The position numbers were made by a program, and so were the translations under genes. This document shows, piece after piece, positions 8,456 to 50,100 of a stretch of DNA of 64,000 nt (the stretch's first letter is position 1; each line of letters opens with the position of its first letter). The notes beneath the pieces are model-generated. The model made no database searches. It was not told the DNA's origin and was given only the letters and a program-made list of their open reading frames with translations. Location of the stretch: NCBI GenBank assembly GCA_965112735.1, contig OZ218950.1, forward strand, positions 3,286,001-3,350,000, given 5' to 3'. The DNA comes from Phaeosaccion multiseriatum (Eukaryota; Protista; Ochrophyta, other classes).

Positions 8456-8495
<40 letters not shown>

Positions 8496-10538: not shown

Positions 10539-10746
10539 TCACAAATCGTCGTCGTCGTCGCTTTCCCCAGGCCAGAGCGGAAACATTCGCGGCCCTCCAC
10601 CCTCGGGAAAGACGCCCGGAGCCCACTGGCAGTACGGTCGAGAGGGCGAAGCTCCTCGTAATCCCTGCCGTCGGACATGCTCGCCACCTTCGACCACTCT
10701 GCTGCTTGTGCCTCTACTTTTTCTACTGCTACTACTCCTACTACTT

Positions 10747-10812
<66 letters not shown>

Positions 10813-12709: not shown

Positions 12710-12892
12710 CGTCACGTAGGCAAAAGGACCATGAAAGGCAAAGAGCCAGTGTACATACAAGAAGGAGAGAGAGCGAAAGGAAAAAAAAGGAAAAAAGAAG
12801 AAAAAAAAAAAGAAGAAAAAGACTTTAGTTCCCGTGTTGTTATCCGACTTGGCGACTACCTTCTCTCCCCGTCTAGCCGCCAGACAGGCTAA

Positions 12893-14472: not shown

Positions 14473-14504
<32 letters not shown>

Positions 14505-15487: not shown

Positions 15488-16291
15488 GACAGTGGAATAA
15501 GTCAGTCAGTTAAAACCGATAAAAGGCCGCCTCTGGCGTGCTCCAGACTCACAACAAAACGACCAAAGCGATTTGGGATTTGCTCGCTCTTTTCAAATGT
15601 TGTTGATTCAGTACTTTTCATTTTTTAGAGTGGCGAGGCCTACTCTCAGCCTATCTCGTTTTGTACGTTCGCTGAGCTGCACAACACAAACCCACAAGCC
15701 TCGGCATTGAGAAGGAAGAACAAGCTCCTTTCGGATAAACATTCCACTTCTCTCCGCGCGGCTGTTTGTTTGAGAACGCGCTTGCGCTATACCTCCTACC
15801 TACCTACTGAATTCTCACGACACACACACACATGCACCCCGATAACCTCTGTTATCCCCTCTCTCACGACCCCATCCATCACACACTACAAACTACAGGA
15901 AACACACCAATCTGTGTAATACGAAAAAGAACAATGAGTGAAAAATATGGAAACCGGGCATCGCAAGGCAAAAACGCCCCCCCGTTCGACTCATCCTGAT
16001 GCCCTACCAAGCCCCCCCCCCCCCCCCGCGCGCGCACCCCCCCCCCCCACTCTCTCCCTTCCCCCTTCCTCGCGCTTCTTTCCCGCCGCCTTTGTTACCA
16101 ATTTATAACCATCGCGTGCTACCACACGCCCCGCTGCTCCCGCTGCTGCTGAATTGTCGCCAACCCCAGCCAGCTCAGCCGTATAATGAAAGACTTGACC
16201 AATCACACAAGACGCCCCAAATGCGCGCGAGTGTAGTCAATCAGTCAGTCAGTCGCCGTTCTTGTAGAGTGGACTCCTCTCCTCTCTCCCT

Positions 16292-19200
16292 CTAATAGTA
16301 CCCACGCATGATGGTGGGGTTGAGCAAAAATGGTCCGAGAATGTGCGAGCCTACGTACACGCCAATGGGCACGAAGACGCGAGGGTCCCATCCGACGTTG
16401 AAGAAGACAACGCAGGCGGCGAACCCTCCTCCCAGCAAGAACATGATGATGAACATTTGCCAGTAGCGCTGGAATGTTTGCCTCAGCTCCACGCCAAAGC
16501 TCTGAACATCGGCCTCCTTGACCGACGCTCCCCACTCAATCGTCATGTCGAAGAAATACCGGAAGCACACCACAGTCAAGTGCCAAAGCACGTGACTGAA
16601 GAACAGGAGCATGACGGGCGCGTTCTTGATCTGGTTGAAGAAGCAGTTGAAGATACCCTTCTTGCTCTCCTCTCCGGTACGGTAAGTAATCATGGCGGCA
16701 CCAAAGACGGACATGACTCCAAACACAAAACAAACCGTAATGAGGATATCGAAGGGGTTGACAATGAACTTGAGCGCGGCGGGGATGGCGATCCAGAAGA
16801 AGAGGTAGAGGATGATTCCGTAGATGGAGAAGGCCATGGCAATGTAGGTACTCAGGTAGGCAACCATGCGAATCTTGGCGGGCGCAGGCACGGTGCTGGC
16901 GGAGAGGTAGCTGCGGAACATCTTGGTGATGGGTCCTCCGCACGGCCAGTCCTTGAACTTGTTGAGCATGATCTCGCAGCTGCCGTAGGCGTACTTCTTG
17001 AGGCGAATCACCTCGTCCACAGCGGTCAGAGACACACCCTCCTGGAAACCGTCACCGGTGTAGCAGCAGTAGCGGCCAATGTAACCGTGAGTTTGCAGAC
17101 GGAGGGCCATGTCGAAGTCCTCGCTCACGTGCTTTTCTGACCAAAACTTCTTCTCAATGGAGCCGTCCTTAATGGCCACATCCTTGAGTGCCGACCATCG
17201 CAGGAACACATTGTGCCCCACCAGCGGGGCGGGATCTCCCGACGAGACAGCCATGGCGATACCGACGCCGTACACATCGTCGGTGAAACGGGCAATCATG
17301 TTCTCCCAGTAGTTGTCGTTGAGGCGCAGGGAAGTGGCCTTGCACTGCAGGAAGCCCACCTCCGGTGAGAAGTCAAACTCGCCCGTCACCTTGGCCAGAC
17401 AGTCCTCCGGCACACGCGTGTCCGAGTCCACGAGCAGGATGATAGCTCCCACGAGCACGTCTCCACCGCAGCGAGCCTCTCCATTGATCTCACTGTTGGC
17501 CATCTGTGGTTTGGTTGGTTGAGTGGTTGGTGTGGTTAGTTGGTTGGCGGTGGGAAGAGCCAGGGCAGTCGGCATGTGAAAATGGGCAGGGCGGGTACGT
17601 CGCCACCGAGGGAGGCAGGCACACACACTCCCTCTCTCTCTTGCACACAACATGCTACCACCGACTATCCTTGTCTATCTCACCTCGAGACCTTGCTCGG
17701 GGTCAACGGCCTTGCCCTCCTGGATGAGCTGCTCCACTCGGTTGCACATGGTAAGGCAGTAGTTCATGTTGGACGCCTTCTTGAACAGACCCGCTCGCTT
17801 TCGCTCAGAGGGGTGGGGCCGAGCGATGTAGCCGCATCCGTGTCTGAGCAAACGAGTGATCGAACAGGAGGGGGGGGGGGGGGAGGTCGTTTGTTTAGAG
17901 CCGGGCAAATGATAGGACAAGCAGCAGCTATTCGGGCTCATTTGAGGCACGTTGTCGGCAGAGGCGCACTGCGCACCTCCAATGCCAAAGACAGGGGCCG
18001 GGGCTCTCTTGTCGCCCCCTGTCCCTATCAACTCATCACCCTCCAACCCACCCATCCATAGCCTCCCCTCCCTCCCTCACCTCTTGTATGTGAAGATTCG
18101 CGAGTCCCTCTCCTTGGGGTCGATGACCGCGAGACCGTCGTCGCAAATCAAAATGTTGGCCTCTCCGCCCACTCGCTTGTAGTGCAGAATGGCAGACGTG
18201 AGCGACTGGATGGAGGGCAGGATGGTCTCGGATAGAGACTCCTTGTACACAGGCATCTGGATAGTGATGCGAGGCAGCTGCGCCGGCCGGGGCATGGGCA
18301 CGGAGCTAAAGTATTTTGAATTTTGCTGCATGTGCGCGATGGGTCCAAGGGCGTAAATGCACTGCGACACCAGGTAGTCAATGCTGAAAAGCATAAACAA
18401 GTAGGCGGCGGGGTAGTACGCCAGGGCGGCGCATCGCAGCCAGTAGCCGTCGTTGAGCGAGTCCCGAATGATGATGAAGGCCCTCCACCCAAGCGCGTAG
18501 CCAATGATGAGATGTGTGACAATCACAGTCATGTAGTTGATGTACGACTTGCCGCGAGCGTGGACAGGCGTCTCCTCCAGACCGTCCTCCACATCGATAT
18601 CCTTGGTCTCCTCCCCCCGCTCTGCCGCGAACTCCTTGCCGAGCTCCCCTAGTGCCTTGCTGCCAAAGCGGTTGTGGCCCGGGGTGGCGTGCCAGCCGGG
18701 TGGTGGGGACGGGGTGAGCATCTCGCCTCGCACATAGCCCTTGGGCTGCTGAGAGTTGGTCTTGTTGGGCATTCGCAGCGGGCTCACAATGTCGTTGCCG
18801 ACCTTGTCAATCAAGGTCACTTGGTCTTTCCTGGGAGGGGAGGAAAGAAGTGCGGTAGCAAATGTGTCAGGGCACAGCACGACATTGCACAAGAAGTGGG
18901 GTGGGAATGGCCAGCTTGGAAAACGTGTGGTCCACGGGCATTGGTGAGGTGGAAAGGGGCGTCTCAGCGCTAAAATTGTGGACGAGGGCACACGACAGGC
19001 ACAATGCATGCATTGCTAGCGAAGACAAGAAACACTCTCCCGGGATAGTAGGAGAGGAAAGCAAGACAGATGCCGACGAAAAGAAAGGCATAGACGATGC
19101 AATGATGTTTGCGGCCAACCGCGGAATTAGAGCGAGAAGAGGAGGCAGGCAGGTGAGGCCTGGGAACGAGAGATTCGAATGGTACCACCTCGCAACCATG

Positions 19201-19539
19201 CGTGGCAAGGCGCCAACTAAAAGTCTCCCCGACCCCGGCCCCCAAGTGCCCTCGCTCTTACCTATAGGCGTTGCTCGTGTCGTTGTTCGATGCGCTGGGA
19301 ACGGAGATTGGTGGCACCATCTCCTGTTCCCCTCCTCGGGATGTGCCTCGCCCGGCCGGGGCACCCGGCGCTTGTGGTGGCAGCTCTCCCGTTGATGATA
19401 GGTTTGATCTAGACGACTTCTTCTTCAGCTTCTTGCTGGACCTTGATGGGGGTGGGGGCAGCGCTGCATCTCCCCCCGCCGCTGCTTCCTCCACTACTGC
19501 TGCTGCCTTGGAAGCTCTATCTTTCTTGGACTTGCCCAT
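16292..19539 (-). CDS. Processive membrane glycosyltransferase family 2 (Glyco_trans_2_3, fungal-type cellulose-synthase-like)
   Basis: Exons 19539-19262, 18830-18081, 17843-17684 and 17503-16292. Motifs ITIQMPVYKE, ICDDG, RAGLFKKASNMN, LLVDSDTRVP, PLVGHN.FLRW, WSEKHVSEDFD and EGVSLT..DE..R..KYAYG. N- and C-terminal TM helices. Confidence 0.92.
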
Positions 19540-20419
19540 CCTGCCCCGTCTAATCTACCAAGCAGGTTGTGCTCCCTCTGGCCGCTGCCGGTGCCTGCCT
19601 CCCGGGAGGTTGTATATTCGGAAATAGGCTCAGCACGCAGTTCGCCTCAAAGTTTTGTTCTTCCTTTCCGGCTTCCGGCCGGAGGACCTCCTACTGCTGT
19701 CCACCCCTCCCCTTCCACGCCCCACCTCCTTCTTCTCTCCCCTCAATCCCCGGTCGCTCCTACTGTTGCTGCTGTACAGCGCCAGCCACTCGTCTCCTTT
19801 CTCTCCCACTCCTTTTCCCTGCTGACGACTGACTAACTTCTTCCGGCCCACGCTCTCTCTCTTCACGCCGGAACCGGGGACCGCAGCACAATCTACGGGA
19901 GCAACAAGTGCAAGACTACAAGACAATGAAGTGGCTTGTACAAGACAGAGTGGCCTTGACGCCCTATATTACACGGCAAAACAACTCTAGGAATTGAGCG
20001 AGGGACGCACACATCACGTTGGGCCAAAAAATAGCCCCCGGGGGGAAAACCGAAGCCAAACTGGACAGTAATCATGCGGTTATTTGGCGGTTTTTTTACG
20101 CTCGTTATTGTACCGACGAAACCGGCCGAAGTTGGATACAGTGTACTGTACGGCACTGTTGCCAGCGCCCGGGTATATAGGTCGCAGCAAAAGGGCAGGG
20201 TTGGGAGCTTCGGAGCTTACCCCCACCACCAGGTGCAGTCGAAGCCAAGCCCTCTGGGAAGATGGCCTCTCCCTGGGCCCCTCTCCCTCGGCCTCGAGCG
20301 CTCGAGCCTTCCAGCGAGGGTGAGAGGAGGTGCGATTTCAAGGGGAGCCTGCTCTGGAGCGATGGACGATCGAGCGAGCAGGTCAGCTCAGCACAATGTC
20401 CAATACCGGATCAATGCTG

Positions 20420-20450
<31 letters not shown>

Positions 20451-20608
20451 CCACGTACGCACGTACGCACACGTACGCACGCACACACAGAGTCGGCCGA
20501 ATAGAGCACCCAATACTTCTACTTTTAGCTGGCGTCCAGGCGTCCAACTTTTGAGTGTCGCGAAGCTTGTCGGGGGCCGAAGAGCAAAGGCGAGCAGGGA
20601 GGCCATTG

Positions 20609-20760
20609 TCGACCCCTGACACGCTATCCGCTATCCCCTATCCGCTATCGCCGGCGCCCGCCGGCTTTGGGGGGGGGGGTTGTGGGGGCGTGCTATCCGC
20701 TGTCGCCGGCGCCAGCCGGCGCGCTATCGAGAAAGTGGGCGATAGCGTGTCAGGGGTCGA
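20609..20760. mobile_element. MITE with 20-bp perfect TIRs and a ~9-bp TSD (Mutator-like size)
   Basis: TCGACCCCTGACACGCTATC (20609-20628) and GATAGCGTGTCAGGGGTCGA (20741-20760), flanked by AGGCCATTG and AGGCCATGG. Internal GCTATC repeats. Confidence 0.85.
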
Positions 20761-20795
20761 AGGCCATGGAGCAGTGGAAGCTGTGGGCACGTGCA

Positions 20796-23256
20796 TCACT
20801 GGCGCTTTCCGCGCCTCGCCCCGGCCCCTCCTCCTCTTCTGTCAGCGCCCCGCCCGCCCCCACGCCTCCGCTCTTTCCCGCCGCCTCTGGTTCTCTGCCT
20901 CCGCCCCTCCCCACGGTCCCCCTCCTTCTCCTCATCGGTGGCACTGCCGTCGGAGAAGTCGTCGTCCTCCACGTCAGTGAGGGCGTTGCGGAGGAACTTT
21001 CTCTTCAGGAGCAGAAGAAGATTGTTCGGCGCGCCGTGATTGGAGGGAGAGGAGGAGGGGGGGGTGGGGATGAGACGATAGGTTAAACGCCACGGGGTCA
21101 GACGACCTCATCGTCACGAGGGGCAGTCAACTCAGGCGGCGCGCTCCCTCTGAACGCTCACAGCAGCAATGCAGTAGTTACACGAGGGGGCCAGAGGGCA
21201 GTTTCAATTGTTACCCACATTGTTCGCATCTGCGTTGATGCACTGCAAAGGAGTGTCCCCCAGGTGGTCCTTCTCTCGCGGCCTGCTGCCCTCGGCCATC
21301 AGTAGGTAGACCTTCGTCGACGGGAGGGGCAAGAGAGCAAGGGCTATTGGAACACGCAGATAGAGACAGGCAGCTCGCTCGGGCCGGGAGCAGCATTTTT
21401 TTCTTCCACTTCTAAGAAAATACTAGTTTTATAACCGCTCATTACAAGTCGCCCCTTTCGAAGCAAAGGCGCATGCAAGACAGATTTACCCCCTTAGGGA
21501 CAGGAGGCCTTACCACGTCCAAGTGGCCCATCACCACAGCAATGTGCAGCGGCCCCCAGCCGTTGATGCGCTCCTTCTCATTGACAAACTCCTCCCCGAG
21601 CAAGGCGACTTTCTCCTTCCCCTCATCCCCATCGTCGTCGTCTCCTGCCTCCGCCTCCAAATAGCGTCGATGCTGAAGAAACAATGGTGGAGGGGGAAGG
21701 CGGGGGGCATATTGGGGCCAGCAGCATGCCGCGGAAAGACAGTGTGTTCAGCTGTTCCCCTTTCTCTTTCTCGCTCTTTCTTGAACCCTCCATCCCATAC
21801 TTTCATGACTCCTCCATCCCTCCCGTCCATCTATAGCCGTGCGCTCTCCTGCCCTGTCGCCCTTCAGCTCGTCCGCACCCATCAACGAAGGCCTCGCCCT
21901 CCATCCCTCCCTCGCTCCCTCTCTTACCTCTCTCAGGACGAGGGCTACGCAATCAAGGTCACCCTTGGAGGTGCTCCAGTGCAGGGCCCCCCAGCCGTGC
22001 TCGTCCGTTGACTGAAGCACTTGCTCCCCGTGCCGGCGAAGGAACCCGGCCACTGCGTACACATTGTTCTTCATCACGTGCTTGCGAAAGACGCTGGAGG
22101 TGGGGGTGAGAGCAGAGCCCAGTGAGGGAGGGAGGGAGGAGGAGGAGAAGAAACAGGAGGGAGCAAGGTCGTCGTGGGAGGACGAGGTGTGAGGAGGACG
22201 GGTGCTTCGCGTGATCGCAATCCGCACTTTCGAGCTCACCTCCCATCACACTCGATTCGTGAAAAGGACACCGAGACTCTCTCCTCTGCTCCCCCCCCCC
22301 CCCCCGTTTCTCCCTCTCTCTCCATCCGACCGTCGTCTCACCTGATCGGCTCGGCAGCAGCTTCTTCTTCTCCTTCTGCTTCGCCGTCCCCCCTGTTGCT
22401 TTTGTCCCGGTCGTAGCGAGAGAGGTCCACCCTTGGTCGCCTCCTCGCTCGCAGCGCTCGGACCCTCTTCCTCTCCTTCTCGTTTCCCTCTTTCTTCAGC
22501 CTCCTCCTTCGCTCTTCCTCGCTCTCCTCTTCATCGCTCGCCTCCGAGAAGTGCACTTGCCTGGACGGGGCTTGCGCTTCCTTCACTGCCTGATGGAGAA
22601 TGCCCTCCACCGCTTCCGCCGACGCCAAAGGACCTGTAGACTCCGCCGCGTCCTGTGTGGAGTCAGAGGGATGGTCCCAGTACAAGAATTAGCTCTCCTT
22701 TTTATTTCTTTGTTCTTACTTCGTAGTACTATACTTGCAACCAACCTGAAGAATATCTGCAGTCTCCTCCTTCACCTCCGAGGCTGCATCGTGTAAGGCA
22801 CAAGATAACAAGGGCTAGTGAGGTACACGGGACTTACGCACAAACGAGCTATCGGACCGGAGTGTATCAAAATTCCATACCTGCTGTGATCAAATCTCTC
22901 TCAACTGCTTGAGCGGCTTCATCCCCCGCCTCTTGCAGCGTCTCCAAAGCGTCCTCCTGCTGAGCGGCAGCCGCTTGCCTAAGGGCATGCCCTGTCCCTC
23001 TTGCAGCTGCCGGCTCTTCTTCTTCTTCCATCTGGACGTCAGCTGCCACGCCCGCCAGGACGTCAGCCACGGCAGCAGCATTCCCTCTTTTCTTTTTCTT
23101 TCCATTGAAACTGGCCGCAGCTGCTGCCGCCAAGCCTCTTGCTCCTGCTTCTGCCGCGGCTTCTGAGGAATGCTCTACATCTTCCTCCTCCTCCTCCTCC
23201 TCCTCCTCCTGTTGAGCAACGGCTTCTGCTGCTGCTGCCAATCCACCAAGAGCCAT
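20796..23256 (-). CDS. Ankyrin-repeat protein with an acidic/coiled-coil N-terminus
   Basis: Multi-exon. ANK motifs DEHGWGALHWSTSKGDLDCVALVL and INGWGPLHIAVVMGHLDV|VYLLMAEGSRPREKDHLGDTPL. Last exon RKFLRNAL...RRGKRQ* ends at 20796. The start (MALGGL at 23256) is tentative. Confidence 0.75.
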
Positions 23257-23376
23257 TTCAACCTCCCCAACCAATACCTCCAACGACTGCTCAAGCAGGG
23301 GTGCTTAGGCCTGGGCCATTGACTTTGTCCTGAGTAAGCTCGATTTCACGATACAAAAAGGGAAAGTGATAACCCT

Positions 23377-23812
23377 ATGATGAAGAGACCACGGAGCGCG
23401 CTGAAGGAGGAGCAGAGGAGGAGGCCTGTCGGGGTGGCAGCGGCTCTTCTTTGGTGCTACCTTCACAAACTTGCTGATGCTTGGGTTGGCCCAGCGAACT
23501 GGGGCTGCACGTCTCAAGAGGGCATGCACCTGCGCCGCAGCGGCAGCGTTGTCACCTCGGGCACTTTCGATTCTCGCGGTGAAGCTGATAGGAGGAGTCT
23601 TCGCCGAAACAGCAGCGGACAGAGTGGGGGCAACCGCAGACAAAGGTCGTCATCGCACGCCAGAGTAGGGGGGGAAACGGAGGCACTCGGAGTTGGAGGA
23701 ACGGTTGGTGGCCCGGCCAGACGTAGGTTCCTCGGATCAAGTGGGTCGCGGTTAGGGGTGCAGAGGGTAGGAACGATGGCCGTAGTACCCGCAGCAGCAG
23801 CAGAATCAGTAG

Positions 23813-23849
<37 letters not shown>

Positions 23850-26073
23850 TGCAGCAGCAGAAGTAGAGGTGATATCGGAAGAGGAGAGTGGCAAACTCTC
23901 GACGTCAACGGACCCGACGTCAACGGACCGCGCTGCACTTCTGATCCCACCACCGCGGGCTCTCGTATCGTTAAAAAAAAAGTGGCAGTGGCAGGACGAG
24001 CTAGAGGGGTACTCAAGACCGGGAGATGGAGCTGTGCGCCAGTATCTCGACACGGCCCTCAGCTCCCTCAGCAAGGAAGAGCTAGGGACTATGGGTGCCC
24101 ATCTGCACGGCAGCCAATTAGGGGTGGGGGCAGACTCGTGGTACTCCGTGGACGAGGCGCAAGTTCCGTCTGCGCTCTACTTGGAGCAGGTGCTGTTTTT
24201 CAAAACGCTTGGGCTTGGCCGTGCTGCAATCAGGGCAGTCTTGATCGTGCGATGTAAGCGCCTTTTCAGTGAGACGCCCGAATACCTGCGCAATCTGATG
24301 GGCCAGTTGGAGAACTATGTCAAGCTCACGCACCCGCAGATTGCTCAGCTGATGCTCCGGGACGCACGCCTGCTCTGCAGCAGCACCGACTCCATTGGCG
24401 ACGGCGATGGTGATGATAAGGGCAAAGTTTTTACCGTCCAGAGCCTGCAGCGGCTGAGGAGCAGCATCGGTCTGTCGAACGCCCAACTCTCGCGCCTCAT
24501 TTTGACGCTCCCCATCTTAAAGGCGCTGGCCGAGGACATGACCAGCACGGAGGTGAAGCCAAATCGGAAGAAGGTTCGCGACTTGCTGCAGCTGACCGTG
24601 CAAGAGGCGCTGGAGATGGAGCTCATGTATCCAGCCATGTTCAGCTTTCATGTGGATAAGTACCTCGTGCCCAAGCTGCAGTGGCTTCAGGACGTTATGC
24701 AGATTGACCGCAAACAGCTCAAAAAGGTCATCCGGCGAACGCCCTGCTTGACGGGTCTCTCCATCGAGAAGAACTTGCACCCTACCATGGAGGCCTTGAA
24801 GAAGGAGCTACGCTTGACCAACCTCGAGCTGGTCCGCATCATCCGACATGAGCCGGAAATACTCAATATGAGCTGGGACAACAATGTGCGCCCGAAGATC
24901 AAGTGGCTTCGCGACAGGCTCACTCTCACCGAGGCAGAGCTGCGCCGAATGGTGTCGATGTTCCCCAGTCTGTTGGTGTACAACGTGGAGACTAACATGA
25001 CGCGTAAAGTGGACTACCTGAGCATCGACCTCGGGCTCACACAAAAGTACGTCAAAAGGACCTTCAAGAGCTTCCCGGCCGTGTTTGGGTATTCCATCTT
25101 GGAGAATATGGAGCCCAAGCTGTGGTACCTGCAGCTGCGCCTCGGCTTCGAGTCTCGGGAGCAGACCATTCGGAGAACAGTCGTGACTCAGCCCGCGCTG
25201 TGGGGGCTCTCGCGGGCCAACATCGAGGCTAAGCTCTCTTTCTACGAGGAGGAGATGGGCGCGTCGCTGGAGCAGCTGCGCAGGTGCGTGAGTGTGTGCG
25301 GTGTGGTGTGGCGTGGTGTGGTTTTAAGGGGGAGGGGGGGGCGGGGTGTGGAGGCGTGGGCGACGTGCCTACGTTGTGCGCACTCTATTGCTTCGGGAAG
25401 GGGCAGGATAGGGCGGGCGGTTTCAGTTTTTTCTTTTATCTTTCTGAACTATTCTTCGTGCGGCGAAGTGCAAGGAGCTTTGCGCTTGCCGCTGTCACCA
25501 CCTTTCTTTCCATCATTCTCTCTTTGTCATCACCGCGCCCGCCAAGTGCATGCCTTCCTTCCGCTTCCTCATCTGCCTCTTCCCTCTGCCCCACCCTCCC
25601 CCGTTCTTTCCCTGCCTGCTCCCTCCGCTCCCTTCAGAACGATGACGGCCATGAGCACGAGTGTGGAACAGAGGCTACGCCCACGCGTGGCTTGCATGCG
25701 GCATGCCGGCATCACTCCCACCTACGTGCCCCATCGGAGCGTTGTCGCCAAGCTCACAGACAAGGCCTTCGACGAGTGGATGGTGGAGAACGAGGGGGTC
25801 AACCCGCGCCTGACGTATATGGAGTACCTCACGGTCTTTCTCGGGATGGAGCATGGCGAGGCATGTCGAGAGATGAGCGCCTACCCGCGGAGGTGGCCCT
25901 TCCTCGCGAGGAACGAGGGCGAGTGCGCGGCCTCCTTGGCCGACGGGAGGGACACGGGGAAGGAGGACGGCGGCGGTAGCGAGAAGACCAGGACACGGGT
26001 GGCTCATCGCCTGCTGCAGCCAGACGTGCCGTTGGATGACATCACCACGTGGTGGGAGAAGATCAGTACTTAG
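23377..26073 (+). CDS. mTERF-repeat protein 1 (organelle-targeted), with one in-frame intron at 25284-25637
   Basis: ~36-aa mTERF repeats (P...L..S...N..PK..WL...L.L). The 354-nt GT..AG intron is stopless, so the ORF track reads through it. The leader ...LADA|WVG resembles a plastid bipartite signal. Confidence 0.9.
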
Positions 26074-26302
26074 CAATCCTTTTGTAGTATATATAATATG
26101 TATGTATGTATAAGCTGGAGAGTAACAGCAGTAACTCAGAGAAGAAGGAAAGAGAGAAAGGAGGGGGGTATAAGCCAACAACCCCGGGGGGAATTTGACT
26201 TTAAGCTTGTCCGGCCCCTGCTCCCCTCCTCCTCCCCTCAACCGATCCTCAACCTCTCCCTCTTCTCTCCAGCGAGCAAAATGCCACAGTGAGCGGAGGA
26301 GT

Positions 26303-29128
26303 ATGAAAGTAGGAAGCATACTTGCTGTGTTAAGCTTCCTTCACAGTAGTGACCGAAACCACACGCGGGGTAGGCAATATGGGGTACGGGGGGTCGAGGG
26401 CTGGGCGACACAGCCCTCAGCCGCAGCAGCACCAGGGGAAGGAATCCGGAGGAGAGCAGGGTTTAGGAGACCGCGCTCTCCAGGCCGGCAGCAGCAGGGG
26501 GAGGAGGAGTGTCACCATGGGCAGCGACTCTTCGCCAGACAGCAGTACAATCGCCTTTCGTACATGGCCTCTGAATATGAGGACGAGCCGGAGGTGTTGG
26601 AGATGACACCCAAGGTGGAGTGGCTCAGAGACAAGCTCAACCTGAGCGAGCATGAAGTCTCCAAGATTTTCATCTACCACCCTCAGATATCGGCGCTGAG
26701 TATTGAGACCACCGTGGCTCCCAAGCTGTTGTGGTTGGAGGAGAAACTGGGTTTGACTCCAGAGCAGCTGTCGAGGATGGTGGTGCGGCTACCGCAGATT
26801 TTGGATTATAGCATCGAAAAGAACATGGCGCCCAAGATGGTCTGGATGGAGAATGATCTGGGGCTTAGTAAGGCCCAGGTGGCCAAGGTGCTGCGATCTC
26901 GGCCTGCCATTCTGTCGTGTAGCGTGGAGGAGAACCTCGAGCCCAAGGTGGAGTTTTTTCGGCGGGAGCTGGGCATTTCACCCGAGCAGCTGATCAAGAT
27001 GGTGACCAAGGAGCCTGCCCTGCTGTCATATAGTCTGCAGGACAATATCTCGCCCAAGGTGGCGTGGCTGGTCCGCGAGCTGCGGATGAGTAAGGCGGAG
27101 GTGGCCAAGGTGGTGTCCACGTGCCCCGAAGTCCTTCGCTGCAGCATTCAGGACACCATGGCCCCCAAAGTGCTGTGGCTGTTGCGAAATCTGGGGCTGA
27201 CGCGCCAGCAGGTGGCCAAAATGTTGGTGAAAGTGCCCTCCATCTTGGCCTACAGCATCTCCGACAACCTCCACCCCAAGCTGGTGTGGCTCAAGGACGA
27301 ACTGGGCTTGTCCCCTGCCGCCCTCGTCAAGATGGTGCGCACGCTGCCCAATATCCTCTGCTACAGCATCTCCGACAATATGCAGCCGAAGCTGGACTGG
27401 CTCAACACAGAGCTGGGCCTCAACCCTCAGCAGGTGTCGAAGATGGTGGTACGCTATCCCAACATTTTTGCCTACAGTATTGAAGAGAACATGCAGCCCA
27501 AGCTCGACTGGATGGAGAATGAGCTCGGCATTAAGCCGGAGAGAGTCGCGAAAATGGTCACGGCGTTCCCCTCGATTTTCAGCTATAGCATTGAAAGGAA
27601 CATGAAGCCCAAAGTGGAGTGGATGGAGGACAAGCTGGGCCTCACCCGAGAGCAAGTGGTGGCGATTTTGATTCACAACCCCAACATTTTCATTTACAGT
27701 GAGGAGGACAACCTCGACCCCAAGATGGAGTGGATGAGAGACCACTTGTGCCTCAGCACGGAGCAGGTGTCCCGCATCATGACGCAAAACCCCAAAGTAC
27801 TGGGCTTGAGCATCACCACCAACCTGCAGCCCAAGATGGACTTTTTCCAGACCACCTTCGGGATGGACTCTCTGCAGGAGGCGGCGCAGCTCACAGTGGC
27901 CAAGATCCCTGCCATGTGGTCGCTGTCGTTTGTCAACATCCAGGAAAAGCTCGACTTTTACGCCAAGGAGCTGGGGGCGGACACCCCGGAGAAGCTACGG
28001 ATGGTCATCCCTACCATGTCGGCAAGTGTGGAGCAGCGCTTGCGACCCCGTGCTGCCGCAGTGCGAGCGGCCGGCATCACGCTGTCTATGGAGCATCTCA
28101 CGCTTGTGTCCAACTATCCTGCGCCCAGATTTGAGACGTGGTTGGTGAAGCACGGGAACGGTCGGAGGCTGCCATACGTGGAGTACCTCACCAGTTACGC
28201 AGAGCCGCGTCTCAATGCGGAGGCGGCGGCAGCAGCGATGCTCAAATTCCCGGACAGGTGGCCTTTCTTGGCGAGGGAAGGGGAGGTTCGGGCAAAGGCA
28301 AAGGTAAAAAAGGCGAAGGCGAAGGTCAAGACCAAGGCAAAGGCAAAGGCCAAGCCCAAGGCCAGGGCCAAGGTCAAGGCGAGTATTAGTATGGGTAGTG
28401 GCAGAGGCAGTGGGGACGATGCTTTAGAGGGGACTGCTGCCAGCCTTAGCAGTAGCAGCGCCAGCATCAGCACCGGCACCACCACCACCACCACCACCAC
28501 CAGGAAGGTAAAGGCAGGGAAGAAGAAGGTGCAAGAGAGTTTGGCGTGTTTGGCGGCGGCCGCTGTGGTTGGGGCGGCCACCGCACCGAATGAAGAGGGG
28601 GCGGACCTCGCTTTGCCAGAGGCGACCGCCATTGCTGAGGCGACAACTTGCTTGGTGGCAAGGAGAACAGCGGCAGCGGCAGCAGCAGCAGCAGCAGAGG
28701 CTGCAGCAGAGGGAGGAGGGGCGGCAGCGGCAGTTACAGGAGGGGCAAGAGCGGGATCTGCGGCAGTGGTGTTGGGGGCGGAAGGGGCAAAGAAGGTACC
28801 TGCGAAGAAGCCGCGGAAGGCCCAAGTCAAGGCGGTTGGGGCGAAGAAGCTTGCTGTGAAGAAGGTCACCGTAAAAAAGCCGAGAAAGGCGCCCAAGAAG
28901 AAGACAGCATTAGAAACAACAGCGGCAGCAGCAGTAGCAGGAGCAACAGCAGCACCAGCAGGGGATGTAGTGCCGGTGAAGAAGGTCACGAGATCGGCCA
29001 AGCCTGCGGCCAAGCCCCGCGCGAGGAAGCAGCAGCCCCTGGCCACGAAGAAGGAGAAGAAGGCAGCGGTTCGGCCGAGGAAGAAGAGCCCAGTGGCAAT
29101 GGTGGCGTCAGCGGAGGCGGAAGCGTGA
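26303..29128 (+). CDS. mTERF-repeat protein 2 with a histone-H1-like Lys/Ala/Pro-rich C-terminal tail
   Basis: About 12 regular 36-aa repeats (P.IL.YSIE.N..PK..W....LGL...QV.KM), followed by a tail with KAKAK, KKVPAKKPRK and KKPRKAPKKK. Confidence 0.93.
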   Translation: MKVGSILAVLSFLHSSDRNHTRGRQYGVRGVEGWATQPSAAAAPGEGIRRRAGFRRPRSPGRQQQGEEECHHGQRLFARQQYNRLSYMASEYEDEPEVLEMTPKVEWLRDKLNLSEHEVSKIFIYHPQISALSIETTVAPKLLWLEEKLGLTPEQLSRMVVRLPQILDYSIEKNMAPKMVWMENDLGLSKAQVAKVLRSRPAILSCSVEENLEPKVEFFRRELGISPEQLIKMVTKEPALLSYSLQDNISPKVAWLVRELRMSKAEVAKVVSTCPEVLRCSIQDTMAPKVLWLLRNLGLTRQQVAKMLVKVPSILAYSISDNLHPKLVWLKDELGLSPAALVKMVRTLPNILCYSISDNMQPKLDWLNTELGLNPQQVSKMVVRYPNIFAYSIEENMQPKLDWMENELGIKPERVAKMVTAFPSIFSYSIERNMKPKVEWMEDKLGLTREQVVAILIHNPNIFIYSEEDNLDPKMEWMRDHLCLSTEQVSRIMTQNPKVLGLSITTNLQPKMDFFQTTFGMDSLQEAAQLTVAKIPAMWSLSFVNIQEKLDFYAKELGADTPEKLRMVIPTMSASVEQRLRPRAAAVRAAGITLSMEHLTLVSNYPAPRFETWLVKHGNGRRLPYVEYLTSYAEPRLNAEAAAAAMLKFPDRWPFLAREGEVRAKAKVKKAKAKVKTKAKAKAKPKARAKVKASISMGSGRGSGDDALEGTAASLSSSSASISTGTTTTTTTTRKVKAGKKKVQESLACLAAAAVVGAATAPNEEGADLALPEATAIAEATTCLVARRTAAAAAAAAAEAAAEGGGAAAAVTGGARAGSAAVVLGAEGAKKVPAKKPRKAQVKAVGAKKLAVKKVTVKKPRKAPKKKTALETTAAAAVAGATAAPAGDVVPVKKVTRSAKPAAKPRARKQQPLATKKEKKAAVRPRKKSPVAMVASAEAEA

Positions 29129-29862
29129 GGGCAGCACTCACTCACGCACGCACGCACTCACTCACTCACTTGGAGGGCCTCCGGTCTGAGTTGCGATTGC
29201 GTTGGCGCTCCCCCCAGGAGGGTCTGCTGCCTTTAGAAGTCCTGCTGTGCCTTGGCCCACAGGCACGTGTGTGTATATATATACATAGTTTTAGCTTCAT
29301 TTTTTAATTTCATTTAAGAGTAAAACCTGGATGAACGGACAGCTAATCGGTTTTGCTGCTAACTCTGAAGGATACAGGTTGTTTGAGGTTCCGATGGCTT
29401 TATTGTGCCTCCCTTACCTATGGCTACTCTGGACGCTGAGCAGAAATTCACACGCACCTCTGGAAAGTGGAAAAAGGGGGGGGGGGGGGCGAGGGGGGGG
29501 CCATTTTCCCAGCGGACAGACACCCAATTCCCTTACGTGCCGTACTTATGTAAGGATGTGACGTACTTACGTAAGTATGCGACGCACTTACGTAAGCTTC
29601 TAAAAGTAATATCTATTGATGACCGGTTTTGGTGGGGCGAGATGCCCCACTCGGTGAAAGTGGGTATTTTTAGTACCCAATTTTTTTAAAAGTGGGTATT
29701 TTTAGTACAGTACCCAATATGGACCAGTAGCGCCCCTTCCCCCCCCCCTCCTTTTTTTGTGTGTGTGTCTGCCCCTGCTACAGGGGAAAATATACTACGC
29801 TATGATATGACGATATAATGGTATTACCACGATAACAATGGTATTCATATTTACAGACACAC

Positions 29863-30180
29863 TTAGTGTCCGTCCTCAATCATGCATGGCTTACAGTAGT
29901 AGTCAAAATCGCCTTCCACAAAACCCTTGCTGTCGCAAAACTCGACGGTGCACATGTGGTGCACGAGGTTTCCACACGCTCTTTCGGATGGGCAGAGGAA
30001 CAGCTTGACTTGCGAGGGCTTAGTACAGCCATACGAGCATGTGAAGGCCATGTCTCCCTCTCTCAAGCCGCCCAACGACGGCGCTGCTGACGCGGCAGCA
30101 GCGGCAGTAGCGGCCGCAGCGGCCGCATCAGAGGCAGCAGCAGAAGCAGCATCAGAAGCAGTACCAGTACCAGTACGCTG
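29863..30180 (-). CDS. PHD-like (C4HC3) zinc-finger module, -1 frame continuation of the recombinase
   Basis: QRTGTG...FTCSYGC...LFLCPSERACGNLVHHMC...YYCKPC*. It joins the recombinase frame if the A8 run at 30181-30188 is read as A9 or slipped -1. Confidence 0.65.
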   Translation of the reverse strand, partial: QRTGTGTASDAASAAASDAAAAAATAAAAASAAPSLGGLREGDMAFTCSYGCTKPSQVKLFLCPSERACGNLVHHMCTVEFCDSKGFVEGDFDYYCKPCMIEDGH

Positions 30181-32913
30181 TTTTTTTTGGGCCCCCCTTC
30201 CCCCACCCCTTCCTCCTCGTCCTCCTCCGGCTCCGCCTCCTCCTGTTGCAGCAGCAGCAGCAGCAGCAGCATTGCTGCTGCCACCTCCTCCTCGTCGTCC
30301 TCTGCACCGCTATCACCTCCATCCCCCTCCTTCGACTCGTCTGCACCAGTGCCACTTTCCTTCGCCCTCGCCCGCTTCGCCCGTTTTTTCGCGTCCGCCT
30401 GCTGCGCGCTCCATAAAATATACACGGTGGTCCACACCAGCTGATTGAAGCGGCGCTTGTGAGAATCAGAACGAGACTTGATGTCAAAGGCGTCTTTGAC
30501 TGCGTCAAACATGCTTCGCGCTTCTTCAAGCGTCGGCTTGTCCTTCCAGAGCCCCTTTTCTTTCGCCGCGGATTCAATCGCACCCATCAAACAGCAAAAT
30601 TTTGACATCCTTCGCTTCTCCGCCCTCCCCTGCACGTCTGCTGTCGTGAATTCTCGAAGGCGAGGAGTGCCTGTCATCCAAGCATCCCAAGCAGCGCGCA
30701 CAGTGAAGCTAGGGACCTCAAAGTGCTCGGGAAGGGTATGCCACCGGCCGTTGTAGAGATACAGAGGTGGCTGATCTGCACCTGCACAAGAAGAAGAAGA
30801 GGGCGGGGCGCTGCTCGAACCCTCACCAAGGCCCAGAGTGCCTGCCTGGTGAGCCGCGAGAAGGTCGCTGAGCCCACTCTTAGAAAAGGCTGCGTCGAGG
30901 GTCGTCTGCAGGGCCCTGCTCACACCCAGACTGGTGACAGTGCCAGAGGCCTGTGCATTCTCCTCCAGAACGTCACGGATCAGCGTCTCCAAGTCGACCT
31001 TGATCGTCTGGCCCAACACCTCAAGCTTGCCGCCTAGAGAGGCCACGCTGTCCGCCACGACTTGGAATTGCCTCAGCTGCACGACGTGGGGAGGAATCCC
31101 GGTTGCAGAAATCTCGTCCGTCTCGTCCGGATACTTCAGCACGACATGCTCTGAAAGGTCCGCCAGCAACCTTTGATCTCGGAAGAGCTGTGTCGTGAAA
31201 AGAGGGTGATTCTCCTGAAGAGTGCTGCGCAGAAAGCCGGCGTGGTACACCACACTGGCAAGACAGAATTCAGCCACCTTCCTCAATCTCAGCGGCACGT
31301 CCCTGAAGCAGCTCACAATGGCTCCCGCGAGCACGTCTTCAATGCCCTCCTTCGCTGTGCCGTCCACCTTGAGGCGCTGAAAAAAGGGAGGAAGCAATGC
31401 AAACTCCTTCGCTGAGATGTTCGCCCCGGAGGCAGCCCGGCCCACATACTGATCTGCTGCATTGATGGGGTTGAAGTAGATGCCCTGGACGCCGGGAAGA
31501 GACCATCCCATTCGAAGTTGCACAGCAATTGGGTTGGGAGCAGCGGACGAGCCGCTTGTGACGTGCGAGGCAGCGCCCTTGCGCCCAGAATGAGTGCCGA
31601 GGTCCTCTGGAGTCAGCCCCATGCCTTCCAAAATGGACGAGTTCGCCGCCGCCGTACGTCTGAGGAAGCCGCAATACCTATCGTACTGATTGTTGCCAGC
31701 GAACAGCGCGTTCTTCTCAAAACCAAAGCTCAGGAGGTAAACACCAAGCGCGAGGACGGGGCAGATCTCCGGCATGATTGGATTCGCGTAGACGTGGCGA
31801 GGATGTCGGGCCTTCTCTCCCAGCTGGTCGCCCTTTTGCTTCCCAAAATAGACGCAGAGCGCGTCCCCCTTCCACTCGAGATGATCGAGACAAATCTCCA
31901 CACAGTTGGTGGCGCGGCACATCAGATTCCAGGAGAGAACGAGGAAGGGGTGGCCAAAGGCGCCCTGTCTGTGCCCGTTCTCACAGACTGCCGAGCTCAG
32001 CATTGCTGCGATGTACACAAGCGAAGGAAACAGTGGCAACCAAAGACGGCGTCAGGGCTAGGAAGTGAGTGGGGGGCAGTCAATGCATCAGCCACTTGTC
32101 TCCACCCACTCCACTAGTTTCCACTGTCCACTGACTCCACACAGCTGGGAATTTACCTTTGGCAAGAGCGCGGTAGAGAGCGAACGGCATGGGAGCCTTC
32201 CCTTCTCTGACTTCGACATTTCCCTCCTGCTTCTCTCCTGCGATCGTCCTCTTCAGCCCCTTGGTGAGCGTCGCAAGGTCGCTTTGCAATTTGCGGTGCT
32301 GCTCCTCCTGATGGTAGTCTCTGTACAGATTGAAGAGTGCAGAGCGTTTCGACTGTGCACCGGCCTTGGATAAGCCCTTCGGCCCCTTCTTGACTTCAAG
32401 CAGCCACCCGAAGAACGCGTCGGCTGTCAGCAGATGGAACAGCAAAGGGTGCGGCGCCCGAGGTGCTTGGATCAAGTGTGCCTTCACCCGCTTCGTCCAC
32501 TGCGCCTCAGCCTTCTTCTTGGCCTTTGCTTGGGCTTTCGCTGCTCTCGACACCTCAGCCGGCGTCTGCTGTGCCGCTGCAGTGGCACCACCCGCTCCGC
32601 CAGGTGCGGCGGCTGCTGCGGCTGCTGCTGCTCTCCTCTGTGCTTCCTCCTCTTCCCCATCTTCCCCGTCTTCCTCCTCTTCCCCCTCCGGTGGAGCAAA
32701 TGCTGTCCTGAAGTCAGGGTCCAGAAGCTCCGGGTGCTTGCGGAAGACGTATCGGATCAGCATCGTGGAGGCGCATGCATATCCACTTCTCGAGCGTGGG
32801 GCGATGGTGTTGTTTCGGGGGTTCTGAATCTGCTGCTGCTCTGCAGTAAGCGGTGCTTCTTCCCCCTCTGCTGCTGGTGCTTCCGGAACCGTAGCAACAG
32901 CGACGTCAGCCAT
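30063..32913 (-). CDS. CryptonS-type tyrosine recombinase, ~899 aa
   Basis: Exons 32913-32157 and 32005-30063 (151-nt GT-AG intron, phase 1, giving ALAK|AMLSS). Catalytic set: SWNLMCR (R), KQKGDQ (K), GTHSGRKG (H..R), RMGW (W) and VQGIY (Y). Also RHVYANP..PEICPVLAL, DQYVGR and FALLPPFF, typical of stramenopile Cryptons. Confidence 0.9.
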
Positions 32914-33569
32914 GGTATACTCTGTTCTCCTGCAAATTCACGTGGGAGATGCCCCTCCCACCACTGGCATCAGCTGTTACAGCCGGGTATCGTCCGCGCA
33001 GCCGCTGCTCCTCTTACATAGCTGCACTGTGCAAATATGCTGATGCTGTGAATGAAATAAACTCCACGTGGGGAGGGGGGGGAGAATGCCCCACAACCAA
33101 AAAATATTGGATAAAAAACTTGAAAAACGAGCATTTATGGCCCATAAAATATCCAAAACAATTATTTCGTGGGGCAGGTGCCCCACTTCACGGTACTATT
33201 AGACATACGGACTACAGAGAACTTTTCCCATTTCTCTGATTCTATGATCCCTTAGTAACTTACTCCCGACTTCTAAAGGTGGCAATGTGTTCGTAAGAGG
33301 CAGGGCCAAGACAGGGAGGCAAGTACGGCGCCAGTAGTGGCTAAAGAAGAAAAAGGGGGGGGGGGGGGGGGGGGGGGGTAGGCCCTGTCCGCAAAACGGG
33401 TGTGTCCGCCCATCCAGGTTTTACTCTTAATTCTAATTTTTTAAAATTAAAACAAATAATTACACGGCCGGGTCCCAACCGCTCACAGATCGATACTCAC
33501 GCTGGACACACAACAGGTGAACAAAAGGGACCGATGTTCGGCCCGGAGCATATCCCAGAGCCGTAAGAT

Positions 33570-47141: not shown

Positions 47142-50100
47142 TCAGCAGGACCCGCGCGCATTGCCAGTTGCGGCTTTGAATCTTCCCGGGATGCGGCTGA
47201 GAAGCTCTGCCGGGTCTGAGGGCAAGGCAGGCACTTGCTCGTTGTGGGGCAGCTGCCCCTGCCTCTGCATGGCGTGTAGGTACAGGACCATTTCCGAGTG
47301 AGCCGCATCCCTCGCCCTTGCTGTGGCCGCATGAAGAGTGGTGCTGGCGCTGGTGCTGGTGCTGGTACTGCTGCACGAAGAAGAGGGAGAGGGGGAGGAG
47401 GAGGCGAGTTGCAGGAGGAGGGAGGACGGACAAAAGTCCCTAAAGTCCGTCCCTTGCCCCAGCACGGCCGCCGAGGAGGGAGGCACCGCCAGCGCTGCCC
47501 GAGCGAGGAGTGCGACGTTGGGGAAGGAAGTCAACCCCACAGACCTCCACCACCCCAACACGTTGGCCGGGTCTTTGAGCGCACGCCGGTCTTGATTGGA
47601 TAGTTGCATGTCTCGATATCTGCGCACCTCGGCCGCCGCCCGGGCCTCCGTGCTGTGCTTGGTCGCCCTCCTCCTCCTGGCTCCTCCTCCTTCTCTTCCC
47701 TCCCCTCCTTTCCCTCCTCCCGCTCCGCTACCCTCGTCTTCTGTCTCGTCTTCGTCTTCTTCGAAGCCAAAATCGTCATCATCATCATCATCATACTCAT
47801 CATCTTCGTCATAGAGGCCCAAGTTGTCCGCATCTACAGCAGAATTGCGGCTTAGTGACCCTCCTTCTTTCTTGCCACCACCGCTACTGTTGGTGCTGCT
47901 CCTGCCTCCTCCTCCTCCTCCTCCTCCTCCTCCTCCTCCTTCTCCTCCACTTTTCCCCGTCCCTCTCTTGGAGTTTCTGCGCCCTTCTCGAATGACATCC
48001 GCGGTGAAGGAGGTGATGCCCTCCCATATGCAACACCTGGCAGACAGTGCCCCTTCAACAGCAGCAGCAGCAGCAGTAGGAGCAGCAGGATGAGAAGAAC
48101 CACTGCCTCCTCCTCCTCCTCCTCCTCCTCCTCCTCCTCCTCCTCCTCCTCCTCCTCCTCCTCCAGCAGAGGACGCTGTTGGCGACGGCCCTCCTCCCAC
48201 CACCTGCAGCACCCTCTCCACGTACCCCATTCCGCGTGCGTTGGGCACAAGGGCAGCAGCCGTATCAAAGAGCGACATCTGTTGGCTCGTTGCTGCCGTA
48301 TCACCAACTGCTGCTGCTCCTGCTACTGATCCTGCTGCTGCTGCTACCTCCCCTCGTCGCCCCCCACCGTCTCCGTCCCCTCCCCCCCCTTGCACATAGC
48401 GGTTCCTGAAGAATTCATCATCAAGATAGGCTTCAAGGCGGGCCCTCGCCTCCTTGGCGGCAGGCGTCAGCTCATATGGAGCCCTCTGCTGCTGCATCAC
48501 CAACTGCTGCTGCTCTGGTGCCTGGGGGTCGAGCAGGCTCAGCGGCTTGCTCGTGTCGAGGGTGGTGAGGCGCAGGCGTATAAGATGCTGGAGAACATGC
48601 AGGGCCAGTGGTTGCATGGGCGGCCTCTCTGCCGAGGAGGAGGCAGGGGATGAAAGAGACACAGCCGCCTGAACGGCCGTCGTCACCGGAGCCATGATGG
48701 AGTACAGCTCCAGCAGCGCCACTCGGTCCTGTGCGGAGAAAGTAAGGAAAGAAGGGCTCTCTCTCGGCCTACTGGTGCCGTTGCTGTTGTTCTGCCCTTC
48801 TCCTTTCCCTGCTGAGCGGCCTTGCCCCTGCCCCCCCCCATCTGCCAACACTTCAGCGGCTACTGCTGCTGCGACGGCGTCTACGGCTGTATCACCAATT
48901 GCTGGTGCTGTTGTATCACCAACTGCTGCTGCCGCACGCCCTGAGTATACCCCTTCCAGTTCATCGTAGCTTCGGAGGAAGCGCCTCACAGACTCGGTAT
49001 TGTGGATACAGCGGTTGACGACTCCGTTTCCCAAACAGTCGATCTGCAAGTGACACACAGTTTGAGTTTTGCGGCGTAAAGGGGACGGATTGGGGGTGGG
49101 GGGCGGAGGAAACATGAGAGGCAATCATAATCATGCGCATTAAAGTGAGAGCATCAAACCCATCCATCCTCATCCAATGAAACGGCAATGGCGATCGGGA
49201 TGGCTTTTGTCGTCTCCTCCTCCGTACTCCTCCTCCGTACCTCCTCCCCATCAAAGAAGTCCAGTGAGCGTTCCCCTTCGGCCCCCCTTCCTCCTTCTTC
49301 TTCTCCTCCTCCTCCTCCTCCTCCTCCTCCTCCTCCTCCTCCTCCTCCCAGGCGGGCGGCTCCCACGGGGGTGCGCAGTTGTTCGGCGAGGTGCTGCTGT
49401 GTGAACAACACTTTGTCAAGTACAGCGCGGGACGCAGTCACCGCCTTGCCACACCCGTCTTGCTCCTCAGAGTCAGAGATGCTGTCGCCGCCACTCCTAC
49501 TCCTCTCAGTCCTCGTTCCGCTATTGCCGCTACCACGGCTGCTGCTGCTGCTGCTACTGCTACTGTTGCCCACATTCATTCCAAAGGCGCGAATGACCGC
49601 CGCAGAGAGGAAGTGGGGGACGGAGCTCTCCGACCTCTGACAGCCGAAGCCTTGAGCCGCCCATGAGGAGCGCTGCCCATCTGTTGCAGGGCGTAGGTGT
49701 GGAGGGCAGGGGAAAGGAGATGAAATGGAGAAGAAAAGGGGGGTGCATGACAAGGGGGCTCTCTCTCTCACACACACACACACACACATGCATACACACG
49801 CTTTCAACGATGCACTGTGACACATCCGCTTGACCCTAGCGCAGGTGCAGCAATCTTGCAGCTCCCCGGAGGTGTAGAGTATGTACCGTTGTCCTCGTTT
49901 CACTCTGTACCTGTGACTCGACTCGGAGACGGCGCGAAGCTTCGCCGGAGGTCGAGACTGAAGTTGCCGCTGCTGTCGCTGCTGTCCCTCGAGCTGCTGT
50001 CCGTAGCCACGGTGGCGAAAACGTCAGCGCGTGGGTCCAGGCCCAAGTCGATCAGGACCGACTCAGCCCACAGCTTTACAGCAGCAGTTGGTGATACAGC

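Follow-up and report, generated by a model that had tools for sequence, protein, structure and literature searches.

What moves a transposon whose only gene encodes a Crypton-type tyrosine recombinase when its ends look like those of a DDE transposon? The question is raised by a 4,109-bp unit (29318–33426) in a 64,000-nucleotide stretch of DNA from Phaeosaccion multiseriatum (GenBank assembly GCA_965112735.1, contig OZ218950.1, positions 3,286,001–3,350,000 of the forward strand), which we call the window and in which all coordinates are given. Cryptons are described as lacking terminal inverted repeats (TIRs), including in a 2026 paper (PMC3212892; PMC13465315). The original prediction for this locus took the ends to be of the DDE type and proposed either a composite family or a one-off nesting of a Crypton in a foreign element. 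We find that the whole unit, from TIR to TIR, is repeated roughly 10^2 times, to the order of magnitude. From sequence comparison, we think it probable that the unit is an autonomous Crypton-type transposon, whose inverted ends would be the binding arms of its own recombinase and whose TTAA flanks would be the strand-exchange (crossover) sequence.

The ends of the element are as follows.

29314–29317, unstranded: left TTAA flanking repeat, the putative crossover, abutting the left TIR
29318–29341, plus strand: left TIR, GAGTAAAACCTGGATGAACGGACA, closing with CGGACA at 29336–29341
reaching ~29356, plus strand: gapped similarity of the left end to the right end, CGGTTTTGC
33403–33426, minus strand: right TIR, the reverse complement of the left TIR at 22/24 positions
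33427–33430, unstranded: right TTAA flanking repeat, abutting the right TIR

The 24-bp TIRs of the original prediction, each abutting TTAA, are present: the left end, GAGTAAAACCTGGATGAACGGACA, and the reverse complement of the right end, GAGTAAAACCTGGATGGGCGGACA, match at 22 of 24 positions, and a gapped alignment lengthens the similarity to ~39 bp. When the flanks on either side of the recombinase gene were aligned locally in inverted orientation, the score was 47, compared to a shuffle maximum of 25. Both ends of the element carry GAGTAAAACCTGGATG; the terminal 16 bases are exact in both TIRs, and this 16-mer occurs at these two sites only within the window. In metagenome contigs the 16-mer gave 119 matches, which we attribute to chance, as they lie on bacterial-type contigs and none extends past the 16-mer or has TTAA. 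The flanking direct repeat is exactly 4 bp, TTAA being scarce in the window (53 per 64 kb), and the terminal letters next to it are 5′-GA..TC-3′. The insertion site is a short AT-rich patch (27–33% GC) amid a region of ~57% GC, between an mTERF gene (end 29128) and a UBA/DHX29-like open reading frame (ORF; start 34102). No further copies or fragments of the element were found in the remainder of the window.

The single gene inside the unit comprises two exons, with catalytic residues given here in exon-2 numbering.

32157–32913, minus strand: exon 1, the N-terminal region, homologous to the SAM-like/core-binding part of the family
32006–32156, minus strand: intron of 151 nt, GT..AG, with the splice joint 32005/32157 in RNA contigs
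30189–32005, minus strand: exon 2, the catalytic domain and conserved C-terminal region
31914–31916, minus strand: codon of R30
31833–31835, minus strand: codon of K57
31590–31592, minus strand: codon of H138
31581–31583, minus strand: codon of R141
31503–31505, minus strand: codon of W167
31476–31478, minus strand: codon of Y176

The catalytic R-K-HxxR-W-Y set is complete. R30, K57, H138, R141, and Y176 are near-invariant in a 29-sequence alignment, and W167 stands nine residues ahead of the catalytic tyrosine, as in Cre. The best PDB fold matches of an AlphaFold2 model of the protein (predicted local distance difference test score, pLDDT, 81.6) were all tyrosine recombinases, namely Flp, XerH, Cre, the Tn1549 integrase, and Ndc10, with Foldseek probabilities of ~1 for Flp, XerH, Cre, and the Tn1549 integrase. 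Fold search alone recognized the recombinase: a Pfam scan of the protein and PDB sequence searches with the single sequence and with a profile returned nothing meaningful. A first homologue search gave 76 matches (E down to 1e-102), including Phytophthora proteins and two JGI (Joint Genome Institute) "integrase" proteins, and an exhaustive search gave 3,928 cluster representatives at E ≤ 0.001, none above ~50% identity. A match to the phage-integrase SAM-like N-terminal domain occurs in four members of the family. In Atlas, oomycete proteins lacking GCR1_C make up the nearest clusters and GCR1_C (CryptonF-like) clusters come next, and the family profile found no relatives among viral contigs. 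Judged by its sequence and modeled fold, the gene is a Crypton-type recombinase, probably most like CryptonS, to judge from the nearest Atlas clusters, the Phytophthora proteins among the homologues, and the alignment of its C-terminal region with family members. Neither a reverse transcriptase nor any other transposase was found in the element by ORF list and Pfam scan, no DDE transposase ORF was found there, and no partner with such a gene between the same TIRs was found elsewhere in the 64-kb window. The original prediction was right on both counts: the spliced, catalytically intact recombinase is the sole gene, as the alignment, fold matches, and RNA splice joints indicate, and a DDE transposase is absent from the element.

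Depth and joints were taken from Logan contigs of sequencing runs placed on the window, with the best-supported matches listed. Summed contig depth is not copy number, and we take only its order of magnitude; one copy alone was read base by base. In run X5, another sample of organism A, the intron had no coverage at all, and X5 is therefore an RNA data set; its contigs span the spliced gene and both arms, with the splice joint 32005/32157 at a depth of 2,337. The same joint appears in contigs of run X6 (organism B). X6 also contains near-identical gene pieces at depth 2–5, which we did not count as a second host, because they may be library carry-over from X5, a run of the same study with depth >2,000.

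Is the repeated unit the recombinase gene, the arms, or both together? Run X1 behaves as genomic DNA, with the intron covered like the exons, no spliced joint, and five flank contigs at depth 55–62. At the left edge, X1 depth rises from 60 at 29300 to 11,419 at 29376, a jump within 76 bp of the left TIR. Depth is about 8,400–13,000 over both arms and 9,000–28,700 over the gene; on the right side it is 13,442 at 33136, 9,448 at 33171, ~10,800 up to 33324, and 142 at 33437. The arms are not deeper than the gene, indicating no surplus of gene-less copies, and the density of common variants is similarly low, with 2 in 690 bp of the arms and 10 in 3,050 bp of the gene. Run X7, a plant metagenome, holds a 90–97% similar relative of the locus, in which one contig matches the left arm inward from 29315 and has a different flank outside. 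Because depth jumps at the ends, no step occurs inside, and the X7 flank switches at 29315, the repeated unit extends from TIR to TIR.

A family of this size could in principle have spread without transposition, by segmental or tandem duplication or by gene conversion, with the TIRs and TTAA as relics of one old insertion. This explanation draws on the facts that a single copy was read base by base and that copy number comes from summed contig depth. Duplications would bring flanking DNA with them, however, whereas X1 depth falls from ~11,000 to 60 within 76 bp at the left TIR and the X7 contig from a related population has a different flank from 29315. We regard spread of this kind as highly improbable.

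Four features inside the arms bear on a second alternative.

29632–29650, unstranded: hairpin GTGGGGC-GAGAT-GCCCCAC, with similarly built hairpins next to the gene in related families
29718–29722, plus strand: left inner TATGG, pairing with 33136–33140, its role as a boundary not supported
33134–33148, unstranded: palindrome TTTATGG-C-CCATAAA, holding the right inner TATGG (33136–33140)
33169–33186, unstranded: hairpin GTGGGGC-AGGT-GCCCCAC, upstream of the recombinase gene

An inner Crypton bounded by TATGG (29718–33140) or by the hairpins (29632–33186) might repeatedly have entered one site of a dispersed, TTAA-flanked family of MITEs (miniature inverted-repeat transposable elements). TATGG direct repeats do flank the gene, TATGG being the terminus of most CryptonS elements (PMC3212892); similarly built hairpins adjoin the gene in this element and in relatives, and the arms exceed the gene in X7. 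Such nesting fits poorly with X1: depth does not step at either TATGG of the inner pair (29718, 33136) or at the hairpins (29632, 33169), it is lower in the arms than in the gene, and the two are equally homogeneous. Among the X1 joints listed, some of them at depths of only 40–250, there is no high-depth arm-to-arm joint, and specifically none from 29718 to 33136, arguing against an abundant empty MITE. Moreover, the main X5 RNA contig bridges 33136 and reads CATGG there, and a TATGG pair is estimated from TATGG counts to arise in such flanks by chance in ~8% of cases. We give repeated nesting a slim chance, and on the depth and joint evidence we reject the inner TATGG or the hairpins as the main element boundary. 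Of the two possibilities in the original prediction, the family thus stands, with the unit repeated ~10^2 times and no arm surplus in X1; the one-off nesting, expected to come with abundant empty TIR elements, falls, as X1 arms do not rise above the gene and no abundant arm-to-arm form is among the joints listed.

In the same right arm, the entire X5 depth carries C in place of T at 33136 and A in place of G at 33171, neither change being present in genomic X1; the cause is either a strain difference or an RNA-level change.

If the unit moves as a whole, do its ends belong to the recombinase or to a transposase encoded elsewhere? The arms carry the following subterminal features.

29476–29500, plus strand: G14-CGA-G8 run, half of a direct repeat with 33343–33378
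29512–29518, plus strand: subterminal GCGGACA, a second copy of the TIR-internal motif, oriented as in the left TIR
33355–33378, plus strand: G24 run
33386–33392, minus strand: subterminal GCGGACA, reading TGTCCGC on the plus strand
33393–33408, minus strand: bipartite motif CGGACACACCCGTTTT, common to both ends of the P0016 family

TGTCCGC also occurs at 33403, inside the right TIR, so GCGGACA is found at 29512 and inverted at 33386 and 33403, in agreement with the original prediction. The G-runs expected near both ends are likewise there; both lie on the same strand, making them direct repeats (family D3) rather than inverted ones.

The informative comparator is a related Crypton family with mapped ends, P0016, whose protein is 38% identical to the window recombinase (E 1e-92) and is encoded on 15 JGI metagenome contigs, 10 of which we used (loci L130–L139). 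Alignment of these 10 contigs defines a 2,550-bp unit, with several different AT-rich flanks diverging at conserved ends and boundaries of TAATT on the left and TAAWT on the right. Four of the 10 contigs, from different samples (L136–L139), contain a head-to-tail junction with a single TAATT, ...CCAAATA-TAATT-GGTTTG..., which is a circle or a head-to-tail array; the contig with the L138 junction opens with genomic flank, suggesting tandem insertion and not free circles only. Goodwin's Crypton model reportedly predicts circles or head-to-tail junctions. The P0016 ends are inverted at 22 of 29 positions, and the junction is a 27/36 palindrome around a 6-bp spacer, ATATAA.

The P0016 ends also share a bipartite motif with the window element. 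CGGWCA-N3-CCGKTT occurs at both of them, as CGGTCAAAACCGTTTC and CGGACAACGCCGGTTC; the right TIR of the window has CGGACA-CAC-CCGTTT, within CGGACACACCCGTTTT, and the left end has CGGACA-N6-CGGTTTT. With a pattern derived solely from the two P0016 ends (≤2 mismatches), the window gave three matches, compared to 1.07 expected, and one of them is the right TIR in the correct orientation. The chance of a match inside a TIR at like offset and orientation is ~2e-4, for a similarity that was noticed before it was tested. With a looser pattern, the window matched at the TIR only, and among 143 loci the matches were at P0016 ends only. The premise of the original prediction that the ends are of the DDE type is thus not supported, as a Crypton family also has inverted arms and shares the motif. 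Because this family with mapped ends has inverted arms around an AT-rich crossover as well as the shared motif, the ends of the window element are more likely to be the recombinase's own.

We propose that the recombinase would pair both ends and excise the unit as a circle, whose junction would read right TIR-TTAA-left TIR (...TGTCCGCCCATCCAGGTTTTACTC-TTAA-GAGTAAAACCTGGATGAACGGACA...) and form a palindromic loxP/FRT-like site of two inverted arms flanking a short spacer. The circle would then recombine with a genomic TTAA in AT-rich DNA, leaving TTAA on either side and so mimicking a target-site duplication. From sequence we infer that the recombinase acts on its flanking ends, that a circle forms, and where the strands are cleaved. 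Arm/gene parity, an intact gene expressed and present ~10^2 times, and an end motif in common with P0016 are consistent with such an own-site mechanism.

In families mobilized in trans, short copies without the gene usually predominate. Could the unit nevertheless be a composite mobilized in trans, in which a Crypton was captured once in a non-autonomous TTAA element of the DDE type (Kolobok, Sola3, or piggyBac-like) and amplified by a transposase encoded elsewhere, with the recombinase gene as a passenger? The TTAA on both sides and the 5′-GA..TC-3′ termini suit the TTAA and RR..YY of Kolobok (PMC9587614), the TIRs are clean and accompanied by subterminal GCGGACA repeats, the inner pair has the TATGG reported for CryptonS termini (PMC3212892), and the outer arms are deeper than the gene in X7. 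In genomic X1, however, the arms are not above the gene, and a passenger of 4.1 kb would have to be carried in ~10^2 copies with its gene expressed and spliced. Moreover, CGGACA-N3-CCGTTT is common to the TIRs and to the mapped ends of P0016, which has no DDE gene and forms head-to-tail junctions. We find mobilization of a passenger doubtful, though not negligible. A true hybrid, in which a Crypton recombinase sits inside Kolobok/Sola3-type TTAA ends and a DDE transposase from another locus does the cutting and pasting, or in which both chemistries are used, would define a class of eukaryotic elements that combines two unrelated systems of transposition yet has no DDE gene of its own; we hold it to be distinctly unlikely.

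Several observations weigh against an autonomous element acting on its own ends. In X7, the outer arms have a depth of 25–31, compared to ~2 for the gene and 3–4 for the flanks, implying that gene-less elements with these arms exist in a relative; these could have arisen by deletion or represent a MITE family of greater age. Neither a circle junction nor an empty site was among the matches listed for the window element, and the right boundary is located only to 33324–33437, as contigs break at the G24 run. TTAA with 5′-GA..TC-3′ termini is also a Kolobok signature (PMC9587614), and the inner TATGG direct repeats (29718, 33136) equal the published CryptonS terminus (PMC3212892). The usual tyrosine-recombinase site has 11–13-bp arms around 6–8 bp (PMC3212892), for which the apparent 4-bp overlap is short, and the shared motif lies 2 nt further out from the dyad center in the window element than in P0016. 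Finally, sensitive inverted alignment of flanks found no significant inverted ends at five other related loci whose flanks were usable, which are single copies with unmapped boundaries.

Inverted flank alignment exceeded the null at L130 and L141, where the similarity is short and involves a repeated TTTTATCGGGG motif, and marginally at L002. A strict scan for TIRs with a 4-bp repeat was negative at L001, L002, L122, L123, L126, and L127; a less stringent one gave only weak pairs at chance level. End mapping in P0002, P0034, P0039, P0009/P0010, and P0011 defined no ends, each offering one locus or coding similarity only. At L126 (1–5150; homologue P0022), a perfect repeat with a period of 2,774 bp (2,376/2,376 positions identical) has a unit consisting of the recombinase and two small ORFs; this metagenome contig represents either a tandem array or a circular episome whose assembly ran beyond the origin. 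Head-to-tail junctions are seen in the P0016 family and L126 only. At L123, direct repeats of 166 bp (1–166 and 4463–4625; 97.6% identical) surround a distant homologue, P0073, together with inositol-phosphatase-like genes, and this locus may be a larger element with cargo.

How does the element compare with known systems? With Cryptons in general it has in common the catalytic R..K..HxxR..[H/W]..Y set, the lack of a reverse transcriptase or other transposase, and short (4–6 bp) direct repeats on either end. The window element nonetheless has TIRs and the P0016 family is likewise inverted-ended; the no-TIR criterion for Cryptons may be too strict. CryptonS elements share with it a lone tyrosine-recombinase gene, the absence of reverse transcriptase, a C-terminal region that is conserved and lacks GCR1_C, and short terminal direct repeats, and the nearest named relatives of the window recombinase are Phytophthora proteins. 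In published CryptonS elements the repeats are 5–6 bp long and in most cases TATGG, and TIRs are absent (Kojima and Jurka, 2011; PMC3212892). The window element differs in its TTAA repeat and 24-bp TIRs, with no TATGG at its outer ends, in its ~10^2 copies compared to the usually low copy number of Cryptons, and in a Cys/His finger after the recombinase. P0016 shares a homologous recombinase (38%), inverted arms around an AT-only crossover, CGGACA-N3-CCGTTT near the ends, and AT-rich insertion sites, whereas its arms are imperfect (~75%), its repeat is 5 bp (TAAWT), no intron was called in its 2.55-kb unit, and head-to-tail junctions were observed for it and not for the window element.

Elements of the Tn916 family leave their site as circles, and their inverted ends are imperfect. 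The Cre/loxP and Flp/FRT systems and the Tn916/Tn1549 integrases have the same catalytic fold as the window recombinase, and the predicted junction is loxP/FRT-like, with two inverted arms and a short spacer; the window element differs from them in its eukaryotic, nuclear host, its spliced gene, its apparent overlap of 4 bp compared to 6–8 bp, and a site predicted from sequence. Sola3 elements have TTAA with GAG..CTC termini. Kolobok has TTAA and 5′-RR..YY-3′ termini (PMC9587614). TTAA flanks and TIRs are thus shared with Kolobok, Sola3, and piggyBac, and RR..YY termini with Kolobok, whereas the window element has no DDE transposase, shows no gene-less surplus in X1, and shares its end motif with a Crypton family. 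In a non-autonomous TTAA family, gene-less copies would be expected to outnumber long ones, a ratio that is absent in X1 and, conversely, present in X7. MarCry-1_FO and Tec1/Tec2 have TIRs, TA duplications, and both a tyrosine recombinase and a DDE transposase of their own (PMC3212892); a recombinase between TIRs and a target-site repeat are common ground, and the window element encodes no DDE. Starships are fungal DUF3435 elements of tens to hundreds of kb with cargo, whose TIRs are longer and often asymmetric (PMC13465315; PMC9156397). They too are tyrosine-recombinase elements with short direct repeats and sometimes TIRs, whereas the window unit is 4.1 kb without cargo and its recombinase is of a different family, DUF3435 clusters first appearing at Atlas rank 99.

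The arms outside the gene measure 545 and 513 bp and contain no long ORF. Three further features complete the interior.

29537–29599, plus strand: three 21-bp tandem units with CTTACGTAAG-type palindromes, in the left arm, downstream of the recombinase gene
29863–30075, minus strand: Cys/His-rich finger ORF with C4HC3-like spacing, which in this copy has a frame different from exon 2
30181–30197, minus strand: G6-C3-A8 homopolymer stretch, the switch point between the recombinase and finger frames, where one base fewer would fuse both

The CTTACGTAAG-like palindromes of the tandem units have an ACGT core and resemble bZIP-type binding sites. The finger frame stays open upstream to ~30300 (~145 codons), overlapping the last part of the recombinase frame; the finger ORF has no Pfam or PDB sequence match, its PHD-like character coming from cysteine spacing alone. 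In the related protein P0041 (locus L127), an OTU-like cysteine protease domain follows the recombinase, recalling the C48 peptidase that certain CryptonS and CryptonF elements are reported to carry. Short G/C-rich hairpins or inverted 6–7-mers, with loops of 3–6 nt, adjoin the gene across related families (L001:8250–8374; L002:834–862 and 3729–3845; L144:2352–2657; window 29632–29650 and 33169–33186), with stems GTTGGAG..CTCCAAC, GTTGGAC..GTCCAAC, TGGGAC..GTCCCA, and GTGGGGC..GCCCCAC. Such hairpins look like a conserved non-coding feature of the recombinase clade. An X5 RNA contig at depth 351 joins the right arm at 33324, through a variant AAAGAAGAAAAAG-run, to sequence placed at left-arm position 29470; a left-type G14CGAG8 run in the right arms of other copies, recombination between direct G-run repeats, or alignment ambiguity would each fit this joint. 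Elsewhere in the window, two tandem long mTERF-domain ORFs (898 and 977 aa; 23377–29128) lie directly upstream of the insertion, and a 660-aa ORF on the minus strand (47142–49124) has a weak match to the hAT dimerization domain (E 7.5e-4, below the Pfam cut-off).

We found no description of Cryptons with TIRs and TTAA in the papers searched, and such algal Cryptons might already sit in Repbase. The rule that Cryptons lack TIRs seems to fail for at least part of a large, almost unannotated clade (3,928 clusters), for which Pfam scans returned no catalytic-domain match, and annotation pipelines that rely on TIRs and TTAA would label such elements as members of Kolobok, piggyBac, or Sola3. Experimental work on Crypton transposition is entirely lacking (PMC3212892). 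The window element, which is young, expressed, and present at high copy number, offers a simple, symmetric, and testable substrate for such work, with 24-bp arms around TTAA, and if the recombinase works on TIR-TTAA-TIR, it would be a candidate eukaryote-native, Cre-like tool.

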